From contig OZ281499.1 of assembly GCA_965637545.1 (NCBI GenBank), forward strand, positions 20,894,001-20,958,000: a stretch of DNA of 64,000 bases, read 5' to 3'. The notes under the pieces were generated by a model. It ran no database searches, was not told the DNA's origin, and saw only the letters and a list, made by a program, of their open reading frames with translations. This document shows, one piece after another, positions 12,262 through 62,658 of the stretch. Both the position numbers and the translations under genes were made by a program. The DNA is from Phallusia mammillata (lineage: Eukaryota). The first letter of the stretch is position 1. Every line of letters starts with the position of its first letter.

Positions 12262-12699
12262 AATGACATAACTTGCGGGACAAAATTCTTATAAAGCGAC
12301 AAAACACACAAAAAAACAGCAATAAGAAGATCCCGCGGCTTTTAATTCAGATATACTACCACAGGTATTGGTTGACAAAGCGGCTTCAAACATTTCTGGA
12401 CGGTATGCAAGCGCAACCATTGCTCTAACAGTGCACATTAAATGTGTAAACAAATTAACAGTTTTGTGTTTGTGAAATCATGCTAATTTTATTTTCTTCA
12501 AATTTGTGGGTCTGGTTTCAAAAATGTTGACTTAAAACCACAAAAGTCCAAGATACCAAAAATACATTATCTGTTGTTTTAGCAAAAAACAGTTAGGTAT
12601 TCTATTAGGTTTATTGTTCATTAAGAGACACATATGGCGGGTAAAACTTGTAAAGTATGGTTACCGCTAGGTAGCGCGGTTAGAGAAAAGAGGCATATT

Positions 12700-13381: not shown

Positions 13382-14845
13382 ACTTATTTGACCGATAAAC
13401 TCGGCAAACCAAAGCCTTAGTACTTTACTTATAATAGGTAAATGTTTACAGGCAGCAGTTTGCTATATGTCCTATATTTGACATGGCTCTTTATTTCATC
13501 ATCAGTTACAAAACAGGCAGCTGTTTGCGACTTTCTAACAATCCCGATGGCGTAATTTTGGGGTCAACAACGGTTTGATTAGCTAAGTAACTACGCTAAC
13601 TGAAAACCTGCACTTGATGTAGGGAATAGAAAAAATGTTTGTGACTTCAATCATTGGTTTTTTTAATATAAGTTACACATTTAGCTTCTCGGATATTGCA
13701 AACAGGGACCACAGTTGCTAGAAAGTTGCAATTGTACTGATTTGTAAAAATTAAAACAATTCGGAAACACTGGACCAAAAAAGGAAACTTTATTTAAAAT
13801 GGCAAGATATATCACTATGGGGGGGGGCAATATGATCCAAAATCTGCATTGAATAATGATGGTTAAAATCGCTATTTTCGCGAAGGAAAAATTGGCAAAA
13901 AAAGACGACATATTTCGTCTGCTTACATGGATTTTCAATGAAGTTGCACAAAGCGATTTAGCACAAGCAAATGCCGGCTTTCAATTCCACCTTAACCAAG
14001 CTGTTCTATCTCCCTCGCAACGAAAACATACTGAATGAAATTGGCATTGAGCGTGAAGCCACTGGTACCGAGGTTCCTGGGCATGCGAGGCCAAGCAAAC
14101 GCAAGCCGGTACAATCGGCTAAAACCTCGCAGTACAGCAAAAAAAAGCGTAAAAATAACTGGGAGGTCGCAGGTTTTTCGCAGTGTACATGTAGTAGTTT
14201 GGCTTTATCACATTTTGATGATCAATGTGCAGATTCAGAAATTTAACGTACATTTGTTGTCAGTTTATATTATTCCACAGATAAATGCAATTAACCAACT
14301 TAACTTTTATTATCGTTTTAGCACACGTTACTTGTTTTGTAAAATCGTATAGCAAACATTTTTTAGCATTAAAATCCCACGTTTGGAAGACAACAAATTG
14401 AGGTGAATCAAATGAAACTTTAGCATCCTGATTAGGGTCTGTATTAAAATGACTTTAGGTTAATTTTGATTGATAGGTGATGACATACTCTTCAATTGAG
14501 TTGAGTTTTTTTCGCCGGGCAAAATCGTAGCAGCACAATTGCGCTAAAATATTCACCAAGCCGGAAATTGTGAAGCTATATGTGGAGGAATCACTTATTG
14601 TTTTAGGAAGAAAATGCAAAACCATCAAAGTTAATGTCTGGTGAGTTTTGTAACCCACGAAACCAAAATTAATCGTGAACTGGTGTCTGTTGTCCTGACA
14701 AAAAATATCCAGATGGCTTTACAACACCATTCAAGCTTCCTCATCCAATATCTGTTATCATAATATTCAGATAACACCACCTTGCACATTTGACATTTTG
14801 GTGAAAAAAAACCTCACACCATACATTCTATTGCACCCAGTAAGC

Positions 14846-50966: not shown

Positions 50967-53900
50967 ATGGAAGGCACTGAGGAAAAACTAATTGATTTTT
51001 CAGCCGGTCGCCTTGTTACTGCTGATGAGAAAGAACCACAAGAGTGCAATGTTAAAGGTAAGTAAGCATGAGAGTGACACGGTGGGAAAACAAAACTTGT
51101 ATAAACGCAAACATAGAACTAGGTCTAATTTTATAATGTATCACGTACATCTTATTTCACACGTTCCGACGTATTTTTTTCATGTTAGGATGTATTCCTG
51201 ATTGGTTGAATGGAGATGTACTGCGCAACGGGCCTGGCGAGTTTGAACTGGGACCTGATAAATTTGAGCATTTGTTTGACGGACCAGCGTTTATTCACAA
51301 GTTTGTGTTTAGATTGAAACTAATAAACAGCCTTGTCTTGACTTGCTTTTTAGTCCCTTTTTTAAATTTACGTGTTATTATGAACTGTGTTAAGAATATT
51401 AGTTTGGTTCTCGTTAAACTTTTAAGACATTCGTGTAATCGACTGCTATGTGACCAATATATAAACGTTTTTTAATCAAGCTATAATTTCAAATCAAGTG
51501 ACGATGTACCAGGTTCAGCATCAAGAATGGCAAAGTAATATACTCGGGAAAGTTTGTTCAGTCGGAGATGTTCAAAACAAATCGGAAACACAACCGCATT
51601 TTATGTGGAGGATTTGGCACAAAGTCCTATACTGATCCATGCAAGAACGTATTTTCAAGGTTGAGGTTCCCTCATTTTCGCAAAAACCTTTTGCAGCATA
51701 AACACTTAAATATATTTCAGTGTAATTGTAAAACAGAAATTTGCTGAGAATCGTTTTAGACTACTATTAAAAATGTGTGTTGTATATTTCTTGTAACAGT
51801 AATAATAACTGTGACTTGTGTACCTGATTTTATACTTTGTTGCAACACAACCAATCATACATCACAGTACGCCAGGCCCATTGAAGGCGCTATACCGAAT
51901 CAGCCGGTCACCAAGCATTCACCACCATATGGCAAGGCGTAGGTTAGAAAAATCTAGCCTGCGGTGGGATTCGAACCCACGACAGGAGTCTTTCCGGGAC
52001 TCGCGCTCTACCAACTGAGCTACACAGGCTCAGTGGAGAATCCGCCGAAAGTCGAATCACAAGCACCGTTGCCTGCCTCGTATGCTGCACATGTCAGCTT
52101 CGTAGTAGGGGATCGCCAGATTGACCAGTATCAGTTAAGATGAACATAAATTCATAACTGGGATCAGCCCTGAAGCGTCTATGCAGACCAGCGATCACGG
52201 CACACTCATATATAAATCACAGTACAACCAATCATAATTATAGACGGTTTAGTTTTGGTAATGCAAAATTTAACTTACGAATATTTCCAGGTTTTTTACA
52301 ACTCTTACAACAACACCGACAATTGACAACTGCAACGTGAATATCGCGTCGTTAGGAAATGTGCATTACGCTATAACGGATGGTAGTATGGCGTATCGCT
52401 TTGACCCTGAAACCATCGACACCAAAAATCTGGTCAATATGATGGACATTATCAACATACCTTTGAGCACCGCACACCCACACTATGGTAAGTAAAGTAA
52501 AGTATTGTTTTTCAACATTTAGAATCATGCGAGCAGCTAACAAACTACGTTTGGTTATCGGTACATCACTTTTCAAGACGAAAACCGCAAAAAACTAATA
52601 TAATATTTTCTTTTCAAAACCAAATTTCAAAGAAATTGTCTATAGTTTTTATAAGAATTGAAAGTGAATCGTAAAAACTGATGTTTTTATATTTCAGAGT
52701 ATAGGCTTCTGACACACACGGTACCAGAGTTTCTTTTGCAAATGTTTTTGTAAAGCGTTTAAAGATCTTAATAATACGAACAATTTATCTACATATCTGC
52801 AGATACCAATGGGGATTACTACAATCTTGCAATTACTTTTGGTCGAAATTCCTACTACAATGTGGTAAAAGTTCCAGCGAGTAGTTTGTGCAACGAAGAT
52901 CCATTGCAAGACATTAAAATACACTCAAGTATAAAAGTTGACAATCCCTTGCAACCAACCTACTTTCACAGGTGACTCAAAAATGTTCTGCATGGTGGTA
53001 TGTTATAATAATCAGTCTCAAGCCATATTCACTACCTTACATAGAAGGCTTAGCGAGCATAGGTACAAGGCATTACGTAAAGAGAAACTAACACAGCTAA
53101 TGGTCACAAAATTGTGAACACGATCACTGACCTTTTTGTTAACTTATCGTTTCAGCTTTGCACTGACTGAGAACTGTATCGCATTCCATGATCAACCGTA
53201 TCGAATCCAAATTCCCAAATTTCTGTGGAAAGTGGCCACGTGGCAACCAGCTATTGATTCATTTCGGGTCGACCCTTCAAGAAAGTCCCTGGTAAAAAAA
53301 TACTGTTTTTAAAGGAAGCCGTAACGGGATGTTTGGTAGAAAAGCATATACTAACATTCCCTTTGTTTTGCTCATTGCTTGAAAATATTAGGAAACTAAA
53401 CCTTCTTTAAAACTAAGATCAACATGTTTATACAAAAATCACAGTACGACAGACCTATTAAAGATTCCATACCGAATCGAGCCGGTTTCCCAAGCATTAA
53501 TTTTTAAAGCTTCGGGTAAGGTAGAGCCAAAAATTCGGATCCAGAAGGTAATGACGCTTATTAAGCTTGGTATTGTCATTACTACACCGATAATTTTAGG
53601 CTGGTTGTAAAAAGCATCACGTATTTATTTTTTCAGTTTCATGTTATTGACAAGAAGTCGGGTGTTCAAATTCCAATAAGATATGCAACTGAAGGGGAAT
53701 TTTGTTTCCACTTCGTCAACAGTTTTGAAACAAGCGTAGAAGAGAGAAAATTTTTGGTGATTGACTTGTGTTGCCCAGGAGTCCCGGACATGAATCACGG
53801 CCTTTTGTAAGTAAGATTAACACAAAACAACTTTTGATTCAAAAATCAAGCATGCACATTATGCAAAGTTGTAAAACCGGCCCGAACCTTCATTTTTAAG

Positions 53901-55796
53901 AACAAATCCCGAATTCGGCCCGAAAGTTTACCAAGGTGCAAATGTGGATAAGTGTTAAGGGTGGTTTGAATCGAAGCCGTTTGGGTAAAAAGCTCAAATC
54001 CAACCTAAAACCCTTGGATTAACTCCAGTACGCACAAGATTTAAAGACATTTTTTAATCATCTTGCAGCCTTTTGAAAAACATGAGGAAACTACAGACAC
54101 CAGACAAAGGTTCAACGAAATTTAAACGATACTTTTTGCCTTTGGGAGTTGATGAAACAACACCAAAAGGTAAAGGTTGAACAAACTATATTTAAAGTAT
54201 CTTGTGTTTGTCATAATTAGACGACACGTCGTATTATACCAACAGTAACATTTTGTAGGTTTTAGGATGTGCATGTCTAGATTTCCATTTTGGTCAAAAC
54301 TCTTAACCAAAGAATAATGATTATATTTTAACCAGTAGTGGGATTCAAATTTTTTGTCAGGCGGTTCTATCACAAAAGTCATGTTTTTTCAGCCGGTTCT
54401 GTTACAAGCAGTCTATTGACATTAACCAGTAATGCTAACCGGTTCGCTGATCTCATAAAATTTCGTGAGACGGTTCTATAGAACCGGTGCGAACCGGCTG
54501 AATCCCACCACTGATTTTAACCAATTGATTAAGGCATGTTTTTCACCTTTAGACGTGAACTTGGTTAACATCGAGGGCAGCATGGCGGAAGCCAAAGTAC
54601 AAGATGATGGCTCGGTCTTGTTAACTCCAGAGGTCTTGTTGAATGATTCGTGTTCAGGCAAATGGGAGCTACCCCGTATTAATTACAAATACAATGGAAA
54701 AGAATACAGGTAGGCAAAATGTTGAATGCTTAATAGGTTGAAAAGTGCGTTTCAAATTCTAATAATAAAACTCTATAAATTTCTTTGTCTGTAATGGGCG
54801 CCAAATAAAAACTAAACTTGTTATTTTTTTGCATCATCAGATATTTTTACGCAGCATCTTTCTTTGAGGAAGACGGTTGTGGTCAACTAGTTAAAGCTGA
54901 CATACAAACCCAAACCGGAATAAAGTGGAATGAAACGGTTTGTGAACATGTTGGTCATGGGCGCCGGCACGTAGGGACAAGAGGGGGCACTTGTGTGTAT
55001 TTGTCAAAAATTGACCCTCCGTGAAAAAATTCTGCCGGTGCCTATGATGTTGGTATTGTTTTTTTGTTCAGTATTTTGCTACATGGGGTGTCACTGTCAC
55101 CACCTCAATTAGCCCTGCTGATCTATTTTTCCTCAAGAAGTTGGTAAAGAATGTGCACCATCTACTTCAAAAAGGAACCACTAATAAAAAAGAATGCATC
55201 TAGAAACAGTGTGATTATGATAAAGTAAAGAAAACCAGAAGAGGTCTTATTGATATCTTGCTCCCCAACCTGAGCGATGTTGATCATTTTATACATGTTT
55301 TGTGTATTTAGGGTTGCATTCCATCAGAGCCAGTGTTTGTGGAGAGACCAGGAGCAACTGCAGAAGATGATGGGATTGTACTTTCAACTGTTATAAATCA
55401 AGATACGGACAAACCAGTATTTTTACTAATTCTTGATGCAAAGACATTTACAGAAATTGCCAGAGCTGAGGTAAACACAGGTTCCAAATTAAGCAAAGAT
55501 TTTGAAACATCTTTCCAATTAGCAGGTTGTTTGAAACTATTCTTAATATATTAGAGTCCCTTATAGCTAACAGTGATTTTATGAACACATTTATTATTAG
55601 TATTTTTTAAATAATTTTGACAAAACCGATGATAAATCTTTGGTGACAAATTGCCACATACATACTTTCTCCAGCATTGTCATACTTTGTCAAGCATAAA
55701 AGTACAATTTATGATAAAATTGTGTATATTTGTATTTCATAGGTGGACACCAAACTTCCACTTTCTTTTCATGCTATTTTTGATGTCAAACATTAA
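50967..55796 (+). CDS. Carotenoid cleavage oxygenase (BCO/RPE65 family), tandem copy 3
   Basis: [12 protein letters not shown]...[14 protein letters not shown], 12 exons in frame. Variant motifs TDPCK (instead of PDPCK), FDGPA, IDN and FHA. Confidence 0.92.
51860..52223 (-). mobile_element. 364-bp retroposed element with an internal tRNA-like domain
   Basis: 13-bp TSD ACAACCAATCATA (51847-51859 and 52224-52236). Short terminal direct repeat ACTGTGAT. Cloverleaf at 51956-52029 followed by TTTTT. Confidence 0.8.
51956..52029 (-). ncRNA. tRNA-like cloverleaf (loop CCGGAAA, nominal GGA anticodon); probably TE-borne and not a translational tRNA
   Basis: GCCTGTG TA GCTC AGTTGGTA GAGC GC GAGTC CCGGAAA GACTC CTGTC GTGGG TTCGAAT CCCAC CGCAGGC T. 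All four stems pair, with A and B boxes. It has C33, an extra nucleotide at 26/27 and a short variable loop. Confidence 0.65.
54333..54513. mobile_element. hAT-type MITE (181 bp)
   Basis: TIRs CAGTAGTGGGATTCA / TGAATCCCACCACTG. Perfect TSD ATTTTAAC. Confidence 0.88.
54956..55046. mobile_element. 91-bp MITE with 8-bp TSD
   Basis: TIRs CATGGGCGCCGGCA / TGCCGGTGCCTATG. Perfect TSD ATGTTGGT. Confidence 0.85.
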
Positions 55797-57395: not shown

Positions 57396-60300
57396 ATGGA
57401 AGGTGAGAATTCTCAAGCTGCTGGTGAACTGCTACTCAGCTACAAACCTCCCTCTGAGCAATCTGAGTAAGTTTTGTTCTTTGACTGCAAGTGATTTTGA
57501 AACATTTTATTGTTTATTAGTTAGTTTTGTAACAAGTAAGTACTAGTAAATTATTATACCCTTCATTACTTAACCAAGCATGCTTGGTAATAATACAGCA
57601 GTATTAATAATCCAGTTTGCATAGTGAGCTATACTGACTTATTTTGTTTATTAAATTTATTGCACTTAACGAGAATGTAACATTAAATTAATAGAATTAA
57701 AACTGTCTTTTTTAGAAACAAAATAGAAAGAAAAATCACTCCTGAAGATCTATTTGCTGATAGAAGTGATGGGCCAGGCAACATAAAACCTAATGATACT
57801 ACAAATGCACAACCCAATGGGTAGGTTTAAATCAACACAATGTCAAAACTTACAACTTCTTGATTGTATGTTTGTTGTCACGAAACAAGAGTTTTCAAAG
57901 TGCTGAAAGCAAAAAAAAGTAAAATATGTTTGCAAGGTTGTGGTCTTATGATAAAAATACTCTGAAAATGAAAAACCACAAAATTTAATGGCCTGTTTAG
58001 GTTTTACATTGCATTAAGGAAAGATTTTTTTCCAGAGTGTTGAGAGTAGACGCAAGTGGCAATGAGGGCAGTGAAGGAAATCGAACATGGGAAGGAATTC
58101 AAGACACAAGAAAGTTTGGTCCTGTGAAATATAACATGAGCTACAAGAAACGAGGATGTTTTCTTATATTCAGCCAAGAAGTGAATTTTGTGAAATATTT
58201 TTGCTGTCTGAAGCAAAACTTCCTGTTGGAGACATATTATGTATTATATCTTGCTCTGTTTCAGAATTTTGACAATGGCATGCCAACTCGCAAGGGTACG
58301 AAGATTGATGCCTTCAACATTTTTGAGGCTGCAGCAAAACTTGGATTTGAGTTTATCAATACTTTTCATGACTCGAAGAAGAGTGAGATTTTAAATTTGC
58401 TGCACAGGGGTAATTACTAAAAAGATATAAACTTCATAATAAAATCTTTTGGTAATTTTTTTACAAAACTCATTGTGAACAATTTTTTTGAGGCTTATAA
58501 GGGAATCTTAAAAGACATCAGTTTGTTAATAATAAATTGTTGTGGAAAATGTGTTGTTATAGTTTTTTGATTGGTGTGGTAGCATATTGTGACATAAATA
58601 TGAAGCAAACTGTGTTTGTGTTGCTAAATGTTGTAAATTAATGTCAACTGTTTTTTTAGTTTCAAATGCCACCCATGCTGAGTATGACTGCTTTGGCTGT
58701 GCAATTTTGACACATGGTGATAAAGGGGATGTACTTTATGCTCGAGATGCAGCAATGAAGCTTACAGATTTTACTGAACCATTTACAGCAAAAAGATGCC
58801 CATCTCTGGTGGGAAAGCCTAAACTCTTCTTTGTACAGGTTTGTGTAACAAAATCTTTGTCTCCTGCAATTATTCATTATCAAGCTGTGTTTATGTTATC
58901 TATAAGTCTGTGTTTAATATCATAAAAGCACACCAAATATATATGCAGTGGAAAATATGTTAAGTTTCTTCGAAATTTTTAATTTATAAAAGTTTTGACT
59001 TGACAAATGATAATTTGAAATTCCATTTTTGTCTAAAAAGCATTATCATGTTCTGCCAAATTTTGTAAACTTTTATGCTAGATATGAGCTTTTCAACTTC
59101 AAGTACACAGACTTAACTGGGGCTGCACGCATAACAAAATATTTTTATTGTAATACTGTTTCAGCCATTTCTCTTTCATTAAGATCCTAGAAGGTTATGC
59201 GAAACCAAATTCGGAGATAGCAATAATCCTTCCAATTTCAATTTTTTGAACATAGGCCTGCAGAGGTTTAAAAATGGATGAAGGAGTTGAGGTCACTCAA
59301 AACATGGACGTGGTTGATGGTGCTGAAGATGAGAATGATTCTGTTTTAATTCCTAACGAAGCAGACTTTCTGCTTGCCCAGTCAACAGTGCCAGGTAAGC
59401 CAGGTAAACAGTCCTAACACAATATTGTCTGGGGGTAAATTTGCACTGTAAACTTGATCCAAAAAAAAAAAAACTGCGAAGTAATTATGGGTCCCCTTCC
59501 CTGAAGGGAACACATATTGATTTTACTCAAAATGTTTGTTTGTTTTTTCTTTTCTTTTTTCCTTTTTTTTTCTTTTTTTTTTTCTTTCATTTTTCTTCTC
59601 CCCAAAGTTTGTCCGACTCGTTTTTCCATCAAATCCTTGATGGATTTGGATGAAATTTACACAGATGGTAGATGTAGTTATGTAGATGTGCATCACACTT
59701 TGTTTTTGTTGATAACTCCAGTATTTACCCCGCTAGCCCCCTAAAATGGGTATTTTTCCCTGAAGTTTGTCCGACTCGTTTTTCCATCAAATGTTTGATG
59801 GATTCAGCTGAAATTTACACAGACGGTAGATGTAGTTATGTAGATGTGCATCCCACTTTGTTTTTGTTGATAACCCCAGTATTTACCCCGCTAGCCCCCT
59901 AAAATGTTTTTTTTTTCCCGAAGTTTGTCTGACTCGTTTTGCCATCAAATGCTTGATGGATGTGGCTGAAACTTATACAGATGGTAGATGTAGTTATGTA
60001 GATGTGCATCCCACTTTGTTTTTGTTGATAACCCCAGTATTCACCCCGCTAGCCCCTTAAAATGGGTATTTCCCCCCGAAGTTTGACCGACTCGTTTTTC
60101 TATCAAATGCTTGATGGATGTGGCTGAAACTTATACAGATGGTAGATATAGTTATGTAGATGTGCATCCCACTTTGTTTGTCCGGATAACCCTAGTATTT
60201 TCCCCACTAGCCCCCTAAAAGGGGTGAGTTTATAAACAATGTCAGAATTGGCTAAAATTTGGATAGCTTGTAAAGTATGCCAATTATCGTTATTGCGTCA

Positions 60301-62658
60301 TTGCAGTTCGGGGGTTGTTAACAGCCCTTTGACGTCAGAAACATTAACAGTTGTTGCTCAAAACACCTCTAGTGGTTGAAATTTTAAACGTTGGCAGATT
60401 GGACTGAAATTTTGCAGTACTATTGATTGAGTACATTGTGGTTTCCTTCGTTTAAGTTTGTGTGTGTTGAACCTCAATTAGTTATCCTACTTACTCATTG
60501 TTATCTATTGAAATGCATTATCTACAACTTTGCATGTGTGGGGACCCATGAGTTTTTGCTTGCAGAAACAACCAAGGTTATAAAATACGATGGCTAATAT
60601 AGGACCCAATATAAATAAGTGTAGGAAATATATTAATGTTTCAAAATATGCTATAGTGTATGTGCAAGGGCAATATGTGCTAAGCCACCCTTCTAGTTTT
60701 CCAAGGTTTTAAAGTTTCAAAACAAGCCGTTACTGATACTGAAATGAGGAGAGGCATTTACTTTAATGTTACATGTGGTTTGTAAATATACACTCAAGTC
60801 CTGGATATATGACCTGTGAAGTTAATAAAAGACTCAATTTTAAATGATCTTTGTATGGTTTAGTTTATCATCCACTATGATGTTTTAATAATGCAAAACA
60901 TGTTTTTAAAGCTGAAATATGTTGACTTTTGTTTTTAATGACTATTAAGCATTGTCTTTCATCTCTTTGACACAGGTTTTGCATTACAATTTCTCAAACT
61001 AAAATTATTTTTAAATAATAGGTTATGTGGCATGGTTGAATTCTAGCAATGGGTCTTGGTTTGTGCAGTGTTTGTGTGAATGCATTCATCGCTTTGGTGG
61101 CCACATGGAAATTATGCAGGTAGAAGAAAATAAGCTTGGTTCCTGATTTTTTGCTGTGAAACTACCCTATTGTGGTTTATCAAGTTCCAAGTTTTTGCTT
61201 GCAAGCACATAAAGAACTAACTTAACTTTATACACTTTATGTTATAGATCATGACCAGAGTCAACAATATGGTTGCATACCAGTTCAAATCAAGCACCCA
61301 AGATGGAAAGGATAACTACAAGCAAATTCCATCCATTACAAGCAGACTAACTGCTGAACTCTATTTCTTTAGGGAAGCTGTTGACGATGGGGCAGTTCAA
61401 CAAAGCGAGAGTCAAGTATGCTTGTCATGCAACGATTTTAAGTTAACCTGTTTGACTGTAGTAAAAACATCGCAGTAAACATCTCAATAATATGTTTAGC
61501 TAACCAATTTTAGAGAAAGGTGCAGTTCGTATGTAATAACAGGCTGAATTGGCAATGTCAGTTTTCAGTTGTACAAAACAAATGTAGTTTGCAGGTTGAT
61601 TTATTGTGGTTAAGATGCATCACTTTGTTTCAGATCCAAATGGTGGCAGATGAAATTGAAGTTCATCCCAGTCAGTCGGAGCAAACACCACAACTAAGGT
61701 AAGAGAATGCCAATAACCAAACATTGCTTGTACAAAACATAAATCAAGTATAGCAGAAAAGCAACTTCTTTGGTGTAAATGTGATTTTACGAAACACCAA
61801 ACACCTGGCCAAGGCCCTTTACAAGTTAGTGGGACATTTTTTACAGGACAGCACAGAAGCAATGCAATATGCAGGCTGTGCCTACATAGCATTTATGACT
61901 ATCAAGACAACTATCTTGCTAGGGGGAAGTACCCTATTGTAGGTAACCAAACAGCTCATAATGACTGATGCGTCATGAATTTGCATGCACCTAATATTAG
62001 TTAATTTGTAACATCGGACTTGAACCGGTCTGTAGCATGAAAAGCCAACACCTCGCTTATGCCTTGTCTGCACATTTGATGTGTTTAACATTAAATTGTG
62101 TGTCAGTAGTCAATTCTGGTTCACTGGATTGTACTCTTACACTACTGACCGAGGTGACACATTTGCAAGTATAACTAAAATGACTGCACGATTGCTAAAC
62201 ATAACGTTGTGTTTTCATTTGACTCATTGTTTATGTCTCTTATGGTTAACCCTTTGAACTTTTCCTGTTGTTTTAACTTCGATAACACAGCGCATTCTAA
62301 CAGTACAGCTTCAGCACGTTAAACTTTGGTTGACAATCTTGTTTTTCATGACACTTTTTCTCGCTTTCAACTTTTTTTTCAACCAATTTGTGCCCACCTA
62401 TTTCCGTCTGTCCAGTTGTTTTAGTGCTATGGTGTCGTTACGAGCTATAGTCGTATAAGTTGTGCCCAAAGTTATTCATTTTAGGATTATTCCGTTGTCT
62501 CATTCAATAGCAGTTTACATTTACATGTGTTTCTTGGCTGAACTTTTTTTAATTTTCCATTGTACAGTGACACAGAACCCCCTCCGAAGTTAAAAAAGAA
62601 ATCTTTGGTATCGCGGATTCGCAAAAGCTTTCGTAGAAGACGAGGAACAATGCCTTGA
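57396..62658 (+). CDS. Effector-type (caspase-3/7-like) caspase with a C-terminal extension
   Basis: Exons 57396-57466, 57716-57820, 58036-58180, 58265-58409, 58660-58838, 59256-59394, 61022-61119, 61248-61415, 61634-61698, 62568-62658. Motifs TRKGTKID, ILTHG, GKPKLFFVQACRG, DVVDG linker, EADFL, GSWF, KQIP. Short prodomain ending LRVD/A. The last two exons are less certain. Confidence 0.9.
59474..60570 (+). mobile_element. Helentron-associated (HINE/DINE-like) non-autonomous element in a caspase intron
   Basis: 10-bp subterminal inverted repeats ATGGGTCCCC (59487) / GGGGACCCAT (60540), a 3' hairpin GTTTTTGC-TT-GCAGAAAC (60552-60569) and an internal tandem array. Confidence 0.5.
59598..60226. 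repeat. ~158-bp tandem repeat x4
   Basis: Unit AAGTTTGTCCGACTCGTTTTTCCATCAAAT...GATGGTAGATGTAGTTATGTAGATGTGCATC...CCCCGCTAGCCCCCTAAAA, recurring near 59600, 59760, 59917 and 60075. Confidence 0.92.

Follow-up and report, generated by a model that had tools for sequence, protein, structure and literature searches.

A caspase-3/7-like gene of the tunicate Phallusia mammillata with leucine in place of the second arginine of the S1 pocket

What defines caspases is that they cut strictly after aspartate, a property carried by three residues, Arg179, Gln283 and Arg341, which make up a basic S1 pocket for the P1 aspartate (PMC2064784). In the paracaspases and metacaspases of clan CD, the Arg341 position is not arginine and P1 specificity differs: Arg341 is replaced by Asp or Glu, Gln283 by Asp and Arg179 by Leu, creating an acidic pocket for Arg or Lys (PMC2064784). 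In the vertebrate regulator c-FLIP(L), the fold is that of a caspase, the substrate site is disabled, and a conserved Leu413 lies beside the pseudo-active site (PMC7586951, PMC5668880). The bacterial effectors OspC3 and CopC, lastly, neutralize this same arginine by ADP-riboxanation (R233 of caspase-7, in the peptide 233-RSPGRGSWF, R413 of caspase-8, R355 of caspase-9 and R314 of caspase-4), and the modifying activity of CopC is needed to block host apoptosis (PMC9239266). Here, we describe a gene in which the arginine is replaced in the germ line. It lies in a 64,000-nucleotide stretch of Phallusia mammillata DNA (hereafter the window; assembly GCA_965637545.1, contig OZ281499.1, positions 20,894,001 to 20,958,000 of the forward strand), where a caspase gene of 10 exons on the plus strand, at 57.4-62.7 kb, encodes a protein of 401 amino acids. 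The gene is in effect a natural experiment on the share that each arginine has in aspartate recognition.

The replacement is found in exon 7 (61022..61119), which opens the small subunit (GYVAWLNSSNGSWF) and translates in frame 1 of the plus strand to GYVAWLNSSNGSWFVQCLCECIHRFGGHMEIMQ, with the leucine codon TTG at 61036..61038. PDB alignments to the caspase-3 and caspase-7 small subunits are ungapped over the exon and set its leucine opposite the arginine of GYYSWR(N/S). In the full-length alignment this residue, Leu267, occupies the position of Arg233 of caspase-7, which is Arg207 in caspase-3 and Arg341 in caspase-1. An earlier, sequence-only reading of this DNA had placed leucine where caspases have arginine, in a small-subunit exon at 61022-61119; translation and structural alignments bear out the former, and spliced transcript contigs from four public runs, belonging to four different studies of the same organism, delimit exactly this exon. 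By itself, exon 7 still matches Pfam Peptidase_C14 (E 1.8e-05). The other key residues, also correctly read at the time, are intact, namely Arg116 (TRKGT), His174 (THG), and Gln215 and Cys217 (QACRG), and their four columns are invariant in 40 homologues.

An assembly, base-calling or annotation artefact would be the most trivial explanation of the leucine, and we consider it vanishingly improbable. The same TTG is present in the window and in the transcript contigs of the four independent studies, all of which cover exon 7 without a variant at the leucine codon, and an independent database sequence (P0002) carries the same leucine. Exon borders are confirmed by the transcripts, which use exon 7 only, and no alternative exon encoding SWR...GSWF was found on either strand between 55.6 and 64 kb; a cDNA drawing on another exon, which could have overturned the finding, was thus not seen. 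TTG differs from every arginine codon at two or more positions, as had been pointed out, and from the AGA of the Ciona and Clavelina orthologues at all three. Because transcripts of four studies, the database protein and the exon check agree, the replacement is real and expressed, and in the species it is at least common; its presence in the assembly, P0002 and the four transcript data sets likewise disposes of a private mutation.

By its fold and dyad the gene product belongs to the caspases (peptidase family C14A), but it lacks a trait that helps to define them, a complete S1 triad. The p20/p10 caspase-hemoglobinase fold, the catalytic dyad His237/Cys285 (here His174 and Cys217) and the QACxG motif are all present, and P0002 matches the Pfam family PF00656 (Peptidase_C14) with an E value of 2.9e-53 over profile positions 3-233 of 233. 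No other Pfam domain was detected in P0002, whether CARD, DED (death effector domain) or other pairing domain. Its closest solved relatives are caspase-7 (E 5.6e-61) and caspase-3, with about 40% identity over the catalytic domain. In the AlphaFold model, residues 90-335 have a predicted local distance difference test (pLDDT) score above 90, the prodomain, linker and C-terminal 65 residues being of low confidence; the modelled core superimposes on caspase-7 with a template modelling (TM) score of 0.95 in Foldseek and lies within a root-mean-square deviation of 1.0 A of the DEVD-bound active form. The short prodomain without CARD or DED, the grouping with caspase-3/7 in trees and the Asp site in the linker (DVVD/G, residues 233-237, by sequence) are those of an effector-type caspase. 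Of the S1 triad, two of the three residues are present, with Leu267 at the Arg341 position.

Compared with caspase-3 and caspase-7 (PDB 1F1J, 5JFT), the Phallusia protein thus shares the fold, QACRG, the catalytic histidine, the first S1 arginine, the glutamine, the GSWF motif, the short prodomain and the linker Asp site. It differs in having Leu267 for Arg233 or Arg207, respectively, and valine for the S2 tyrosine, in adding a tunicate-specific AGELL N-terminal motif and a 65-residue C-terminal extension, and in belonging to a tunicate-only clade. It is not a pseudo-caspase of the c-FLIP type, since FLIP(L) has lost both residues of the dyad (Arg315 and Tyr360 stand in their place) and has two DEDs (PMC7586951), whereas the Phallusia protein keeps His and Cys, the loss of either of which would define a pseudo-caspase, and is without a DED. 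Nor does it resemble the paracaspases and metacaspases, because the pocket is acidic in those; here, a single pocket residue is changed, to a neutral leucine. Finally, modification by OspC3 or CopC is inflicted by a pathogen on a normal caspase after translation, in contrast to an encoded loss. It can be speculated that the loss also removes the target of such ADP-riboxanating effectors.

Maximum-likelihood trees unite all tunicate caspase-3/7-like proteins in a single clade (support 100/99) and join it with vertebrate caspase-3/7 and a caspase-7-like protein from a hemichordate. Within the tunicate clade, P0002 belongs to an orthogroup (support 98/96 in a first tree and 90/93 in a second) with Ciona intestinalis P0154, C. 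savignyi P0023 (H2ZDS2) and two Clavelina lepadiformis genes (P0266/P0027 and P0028); C. savignyi is sister to C. intestinalis (96/96). A profile built from the five orthogroup members retrieved no additional members, and a word-index search limited to the 43 amino acids of the exon 7 piece gave zero candidates; neither brought to light a closer relative from other Phallusia species or other Ascidiidae. A homologous exon with the borders of exon 7 is present in the genomic DNA of C. intestinalis and of Clavelina P0266. Synteny lends no support to orthology, as the neighbours differ at the Ciona and Clavelina loci, where no RPE65-type gene is present; orthology therefore rests on the trees, the exon borders in C. 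intestinalis and Clavelina P0266, and the shared motifs. These data indicate that the protein is a lineage-specific tunicate paralogue of effector type, not a one-to-one orthologue of caspase-3/7. The gene had previously been treated as an ordinary caspase; it is instead a caspase-3/7-like paralogue peculiar to tunicates, marked by a conserved motif at the N-terminus and a basic tail at the C-terminus.

The orthogroup also gives the direction of the change. At the position of Leu267, arginine is found in C. intestinalis and both Clavelina genes, asparagine in C. savignyi and leucine in Phallusia only. The sequence facts of the earlier interpretation stand, and the check it proposed, whether W-L-N is conserved among orthologues, gives a negative answer. 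Since C. intestinalis and both Clavelina genes keep arginine, this residue is ancestral for the orthogroup, the asparagine having arisen independently in C. savignyi; and as W-L-N is not common to orthologues, the leucine is derived and lineage-specific, acquired on the Phallusia branch. On this evidence the replacement dates from after the split of the Phallusia lineage from Ciona. Genomic DNA of both C. intestinalis and Clavelina P0266 has AGA for the arginine, and the three differences between AGA and TTG imply at least one intermediate residue other than arginine, unless the ancestral codon was CGN.

To place the change among caspases at large, caspase domains were cut from 300-odd retrieved homologues and aligned to one profile, giving 245 domains with all five key columns filled. 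The set R-H-Q-C-R was complete in 228 of the 245. The last arginine was absent in 10, and seven of these (about 3% of the survey) kept the other four key residues: Phallusia (L), C. savignyi H2ZDS2 (N), a tunicate-like protein from a JGI contig, P0079 (I), and four others (H, H, Q and K). The last four come from a thrips and a dragonfly, as domains of proteins with tandem caspases, and from one unnamed sequence. It should be noted that P0079 was not placed in the orthogroup, on account of its long branch, and counts solely as another tunicate case. The pattern of key residues intact except for Arg341 is therefore rare but not unique, and the second S1 arginine was lost repeatedly in tunicate caspases while catalytic residues were kept. 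Our literature search found no paper on the Phallusia protein, nor on any natural caspase in which Arg341 is replaced by a hydrophobic residue, the 2005 urochordate caspase survey (Weill et al.) falling outside its coverage.

The insect cases are proteins with two caspase domains. In P0043, P0058 (Frankliniella occidentalis) and P0013 (Ladona fulva), one domain has Gln, His or Lys at Arg341 with Arg179, His, Gln and Cys intact, and these are independent cases. Together, the repeated tunicate losses and the insect cases suggest a recurring evolutionary route rather than a one-off event.

Loss of the arginine might simply reflect nearly neutral drift: as a redundant copy in a birth-and-death family, the gene would be tolerated or would be declining slowly in function. 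Tunicates do have many lineage-specific caspase-3/7-like copies, and the nearest orthologues retain the arginine. Against this, the reading frame is open and the introns are correctly removed in the transcripts of all four studies, and the tail and linker motifs are conserved. Comparison of the window with the transcript contigs yielded a small sample of 13 variant sites, 9 synonymous and 4 non-synonymous, where neutrality predicts roughly three non-synonymous changes for each synonymous one. Of the 56 near-invariant columns of the family (identical in at least 23 of 26 members), P0002 departs at 3, within a family range of 0-6; one of the three is the arginine itself and another is polymorphic, with the consensus residue on the window allele. 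The terminal branch of P0002 measures 0.66-0.69, which does not exceed those of the arginine-bearing Clavelina orthologues. The evidence thus says that the gene is not decaying, and we regard drift as rather improbable. The change is derived, has recurred in tunicate caspases and seems to be tolerated under selection. Both altered or relaxed P1 specificity and a near-pseudoenzyme, the two outcomes envisaged from the sequence at the outset, would fit the signs of purifying selection and the intact catalytic residues.

Tentatively, and with slightly less than half of our confidence behind it, we favour an enzyme that is still a protease, with attenuated or relaxed recognition of aspartate. Leu267 would leave Arg116 and Gln215 alone to bind the P1 carboxylate, and because only these two would hold it, aspartate recognition should be much weaker or looser, with the chemistry of catalysis untouched. 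That the protein's own linker keeps DVVD/G makes activation in trans by a normal caspase the simplest scheme, the site probably being cut by another, Asp-specific caspase. The substrate set would probably be narrow, possibly localized by the conserved basic C-terminal tail. The substrate groove seems to have diverged in this orthogroup before the arginine was lost, since the S2 tyrosine of caspase-3/7 (GYYSW) is replaced throughout, by V, S, I, M or A (GYVAW in Phallusia).

Several points weigh against this interpretation. The activity of the Phallusia protein and of other caspases lacking the arginine, like everything said here on enzyme activity, we infer from sequence, and conserved catalytic residues are no proof of catalysis. 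With one of its two charge partners gone, the pocket might no longer support useful catalysis at all, rather than supporting it less well. Cleavage of DVVD/G in trans is deduced from the motif alone, and both Ciona orthologues are without the site. A single database gene model lies behind the asparagine of C. savignyi, and the population sample of 13 variant sites is small.

If the S1 defect made catalysis negligible, the protein would be a regulatory near-pseudoenzyme that pairs or competes with active caspases or inhibitors, much as c-FLIP(L) does with caspase-8. The missing arginine is, after all, one of just three S1 residues; its covalent modification by CopC, a blocker of apoptosis, suggests that it carries functional weight, and the conserved N-terminal motif and basic tail hint at non-catalytic roles. 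We nevertheless think this unlikely, given that His, Cys, QACRG, Arg116 and Gln215 are kept both here and in the independent Asn and Ile cases, that in FLIP(L), a known pseudo-caspase, both residues of the dyad are gone (PMC7586951), and that no DED or other pairing domain accompanies Peptidase_C14. Somewhat more doubtful still is a true change of specificity, in which a leucine-lined S1 pocket would prefer a P1 residue other than aspartate, be it neutral, smaller or hydrophobic. S1 residues do set P1 preference in clan CD, where acidic replacements of Arg341 and Gln283 accompany the Arg/Lys specificity of paracaspases and metacaspases (PMC2064784). The Arg341 position has also been remodelled repeatedly in tunicates (L, N, I) with catalysis-related residues kept, and the adjoining S2 tyrosine is replaced across the orthogroup. 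Arg116 and Gln215, however, would still form a positively charged pocket compatible with aspartate, the linker of the protein itself still bears an Asp site, and leucine, asparagine and isoleucine are chemically so unlike one another that relaxed constraint is suggested more than convergence. In its boldest form, this idea would have tunicates repeatedly remodelling S1, with the Phallusia enzyme an active caspase for which a P1 aspartate has ceased to be necessary, or to be favoured, a natural 'non-aspase'; we rate that as improbable as drift. Whichever applies, the gene could show whether the animal caspase fold was re-tuned to other cleavage rules, or to regulation, without loss of the dyad, and the arginine-bearing Ciona and Clavelina orthologues provide natural controls for residue swaps.

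The exons were first read from the DNA sequence and then checked against the spliced contigs of the four runs. All splice joints are GT..AG and at the predicted places: 57466/57716, 57820/58036, 58180/58265, 58409/58660, 58838/59256, 59394/61022, 61119/61248 and 61415/61634. Beyond 61698, a loose transcript end resumes at 62568. The coding sequence comprises 1206 bases, or 401 codons and the stop TGA at 62656-62658. Exons were searched singly and P0002 ('Uncharacterized protein LOC100178691', Phallusia mammillata, 401 amino acids), found through the exon 5 piece, was used as full-length stand-in for the gene; by tblastn it matches all ten exons, with 6 residues differing from the window. These six differences reflect a high allelic diversity (sites at 58049-58054, 58333, 61074, 61369 and others) of the kind typical of heterozygosity in ascidians; one of them, at P1' of LRVD/A, exchanges Ala and Thr.

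Coding exon 1 (57396..57466, plus strand, as are all the others) encodes Met1-Glu24 and is delimited by the tblastn match of P0002 and its joint to exon 2. Exon 2 (57716..57820), supported by GT..AG joints in four runs and by tblastn, encodes prodomain. On the same kinds of evidence, exon 3 (58036..58180) carries the putative processing site LRVD/A (Asp64, 58049-58051) and the start of the caspase domain (YNMSYKKRGCFLIFSQE). Both this site and DVVD/G had been reported from the sequence alone, and both are indeed there. The first S1 arginine, Arg116 (CGC, 58289-58291), is encoded in exon 4 (58265..58409), placed by its joints and the invariant alignment column. Exon 5 (58660..58838) contains the catalytic His174 (58713-58715) and ends at Gln215 (58836-58838); besides its joints, it is supported by Pfam (E 2.5e-14 for Peptidase_C14 with this exon alone) and by PDB matches to caspase-6/3/7. 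Exon 6 (59256..59394; Pfam, joints, tblastn) encodes ACRG, including the catalytic Cys217 (59259-59261), and the linker between the subunits, in which Asp236 of DVVD/G is at 59316-59318. This linker site is also found in Clavelina. Exon 7, defined by Pfam, the PDB alignments and its two joints, is followed by exon 8 (61248..61415), which supplies the remainder of the small subunit (IMTRVNN...KQIPSITSRLTAELYFF) and is supported by PDB matches to caspase-3 and by its joints. Exon 9 (61634..61698), placed by its joint to exon 8 and a P0002 match of 100% identity, begins the C-terminal extension. Exon 10 (62568..62658) encodes the basic tail PKLKKKSLVSRIRKSFRRRRGTMP and the stop codon; it matches the loose transcript end, and its motif is kept in orthologues. 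Outside 57-63 kb of the window, caspase queries matched nothing at E below 1e-3; a tblastn match of the caspase C-terminus at 13962-14156 (E 0.51) had no further support and was rejected.

The two ends of the protein carry motifs of their own. An N-terminal A-G-[DE]-[ILV]-L is common to the orthogroup, the Phallusia version being AGELLLSY (57420-57443). A slightly broader form, A-G-[DEN]-[ILV]-L, occurs in nearly all retrieved tunicate caspase-3/7-like proteins, across several paralogue groups, and is predicted to form a small helix (pLDDT 70-80). At the other end, the extension of 65 residues finishes in the basic tail RIRKSFRRRR. The motif R-[IL]-R-[KR]-S-F-R is found in Phallusia, C. savignyi P0023 and Clavelina P0266/P0027, and was not seen in Clavelina P0028. 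In C. intestinalis, it is encoded by an exon that lies downstream of, and is not included in, the current NCBI model P0154. Read from the sequences, the tail motif is at 62584-62655 in the window, at about 14873 in locus L001 and at 12514-12600 in locus L002. As R-[IL]-R-[KR]-S-F-R-R, it resembles a kinase site in a polybasic patch.

Upstream of the caspase gene, at about 51100-55600 on the plus strand, lies a gene of several exons that belongs to the RPE65/carotenoid oxygenase family (Pfam PF03055, in four open reading frame pieces). In C. intestinalis, another caspase gene, whose product has 733 residues (L001 1-4549), precedes the orthologue by about 5.5 kb; caspase genes are thus clustered there. 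Intron 6 of the Phallusia gene contains, at 59599-60225, four tandem copies of a 158-bp unit that are 89% alike. In transcript-type runs, contig depth over this repeat exceeded that over the neighbouring exons by a factor of 10 to 100 or more, varying with the run, and the repeat therefore belongs to a dispersed, transcribed repeat family.

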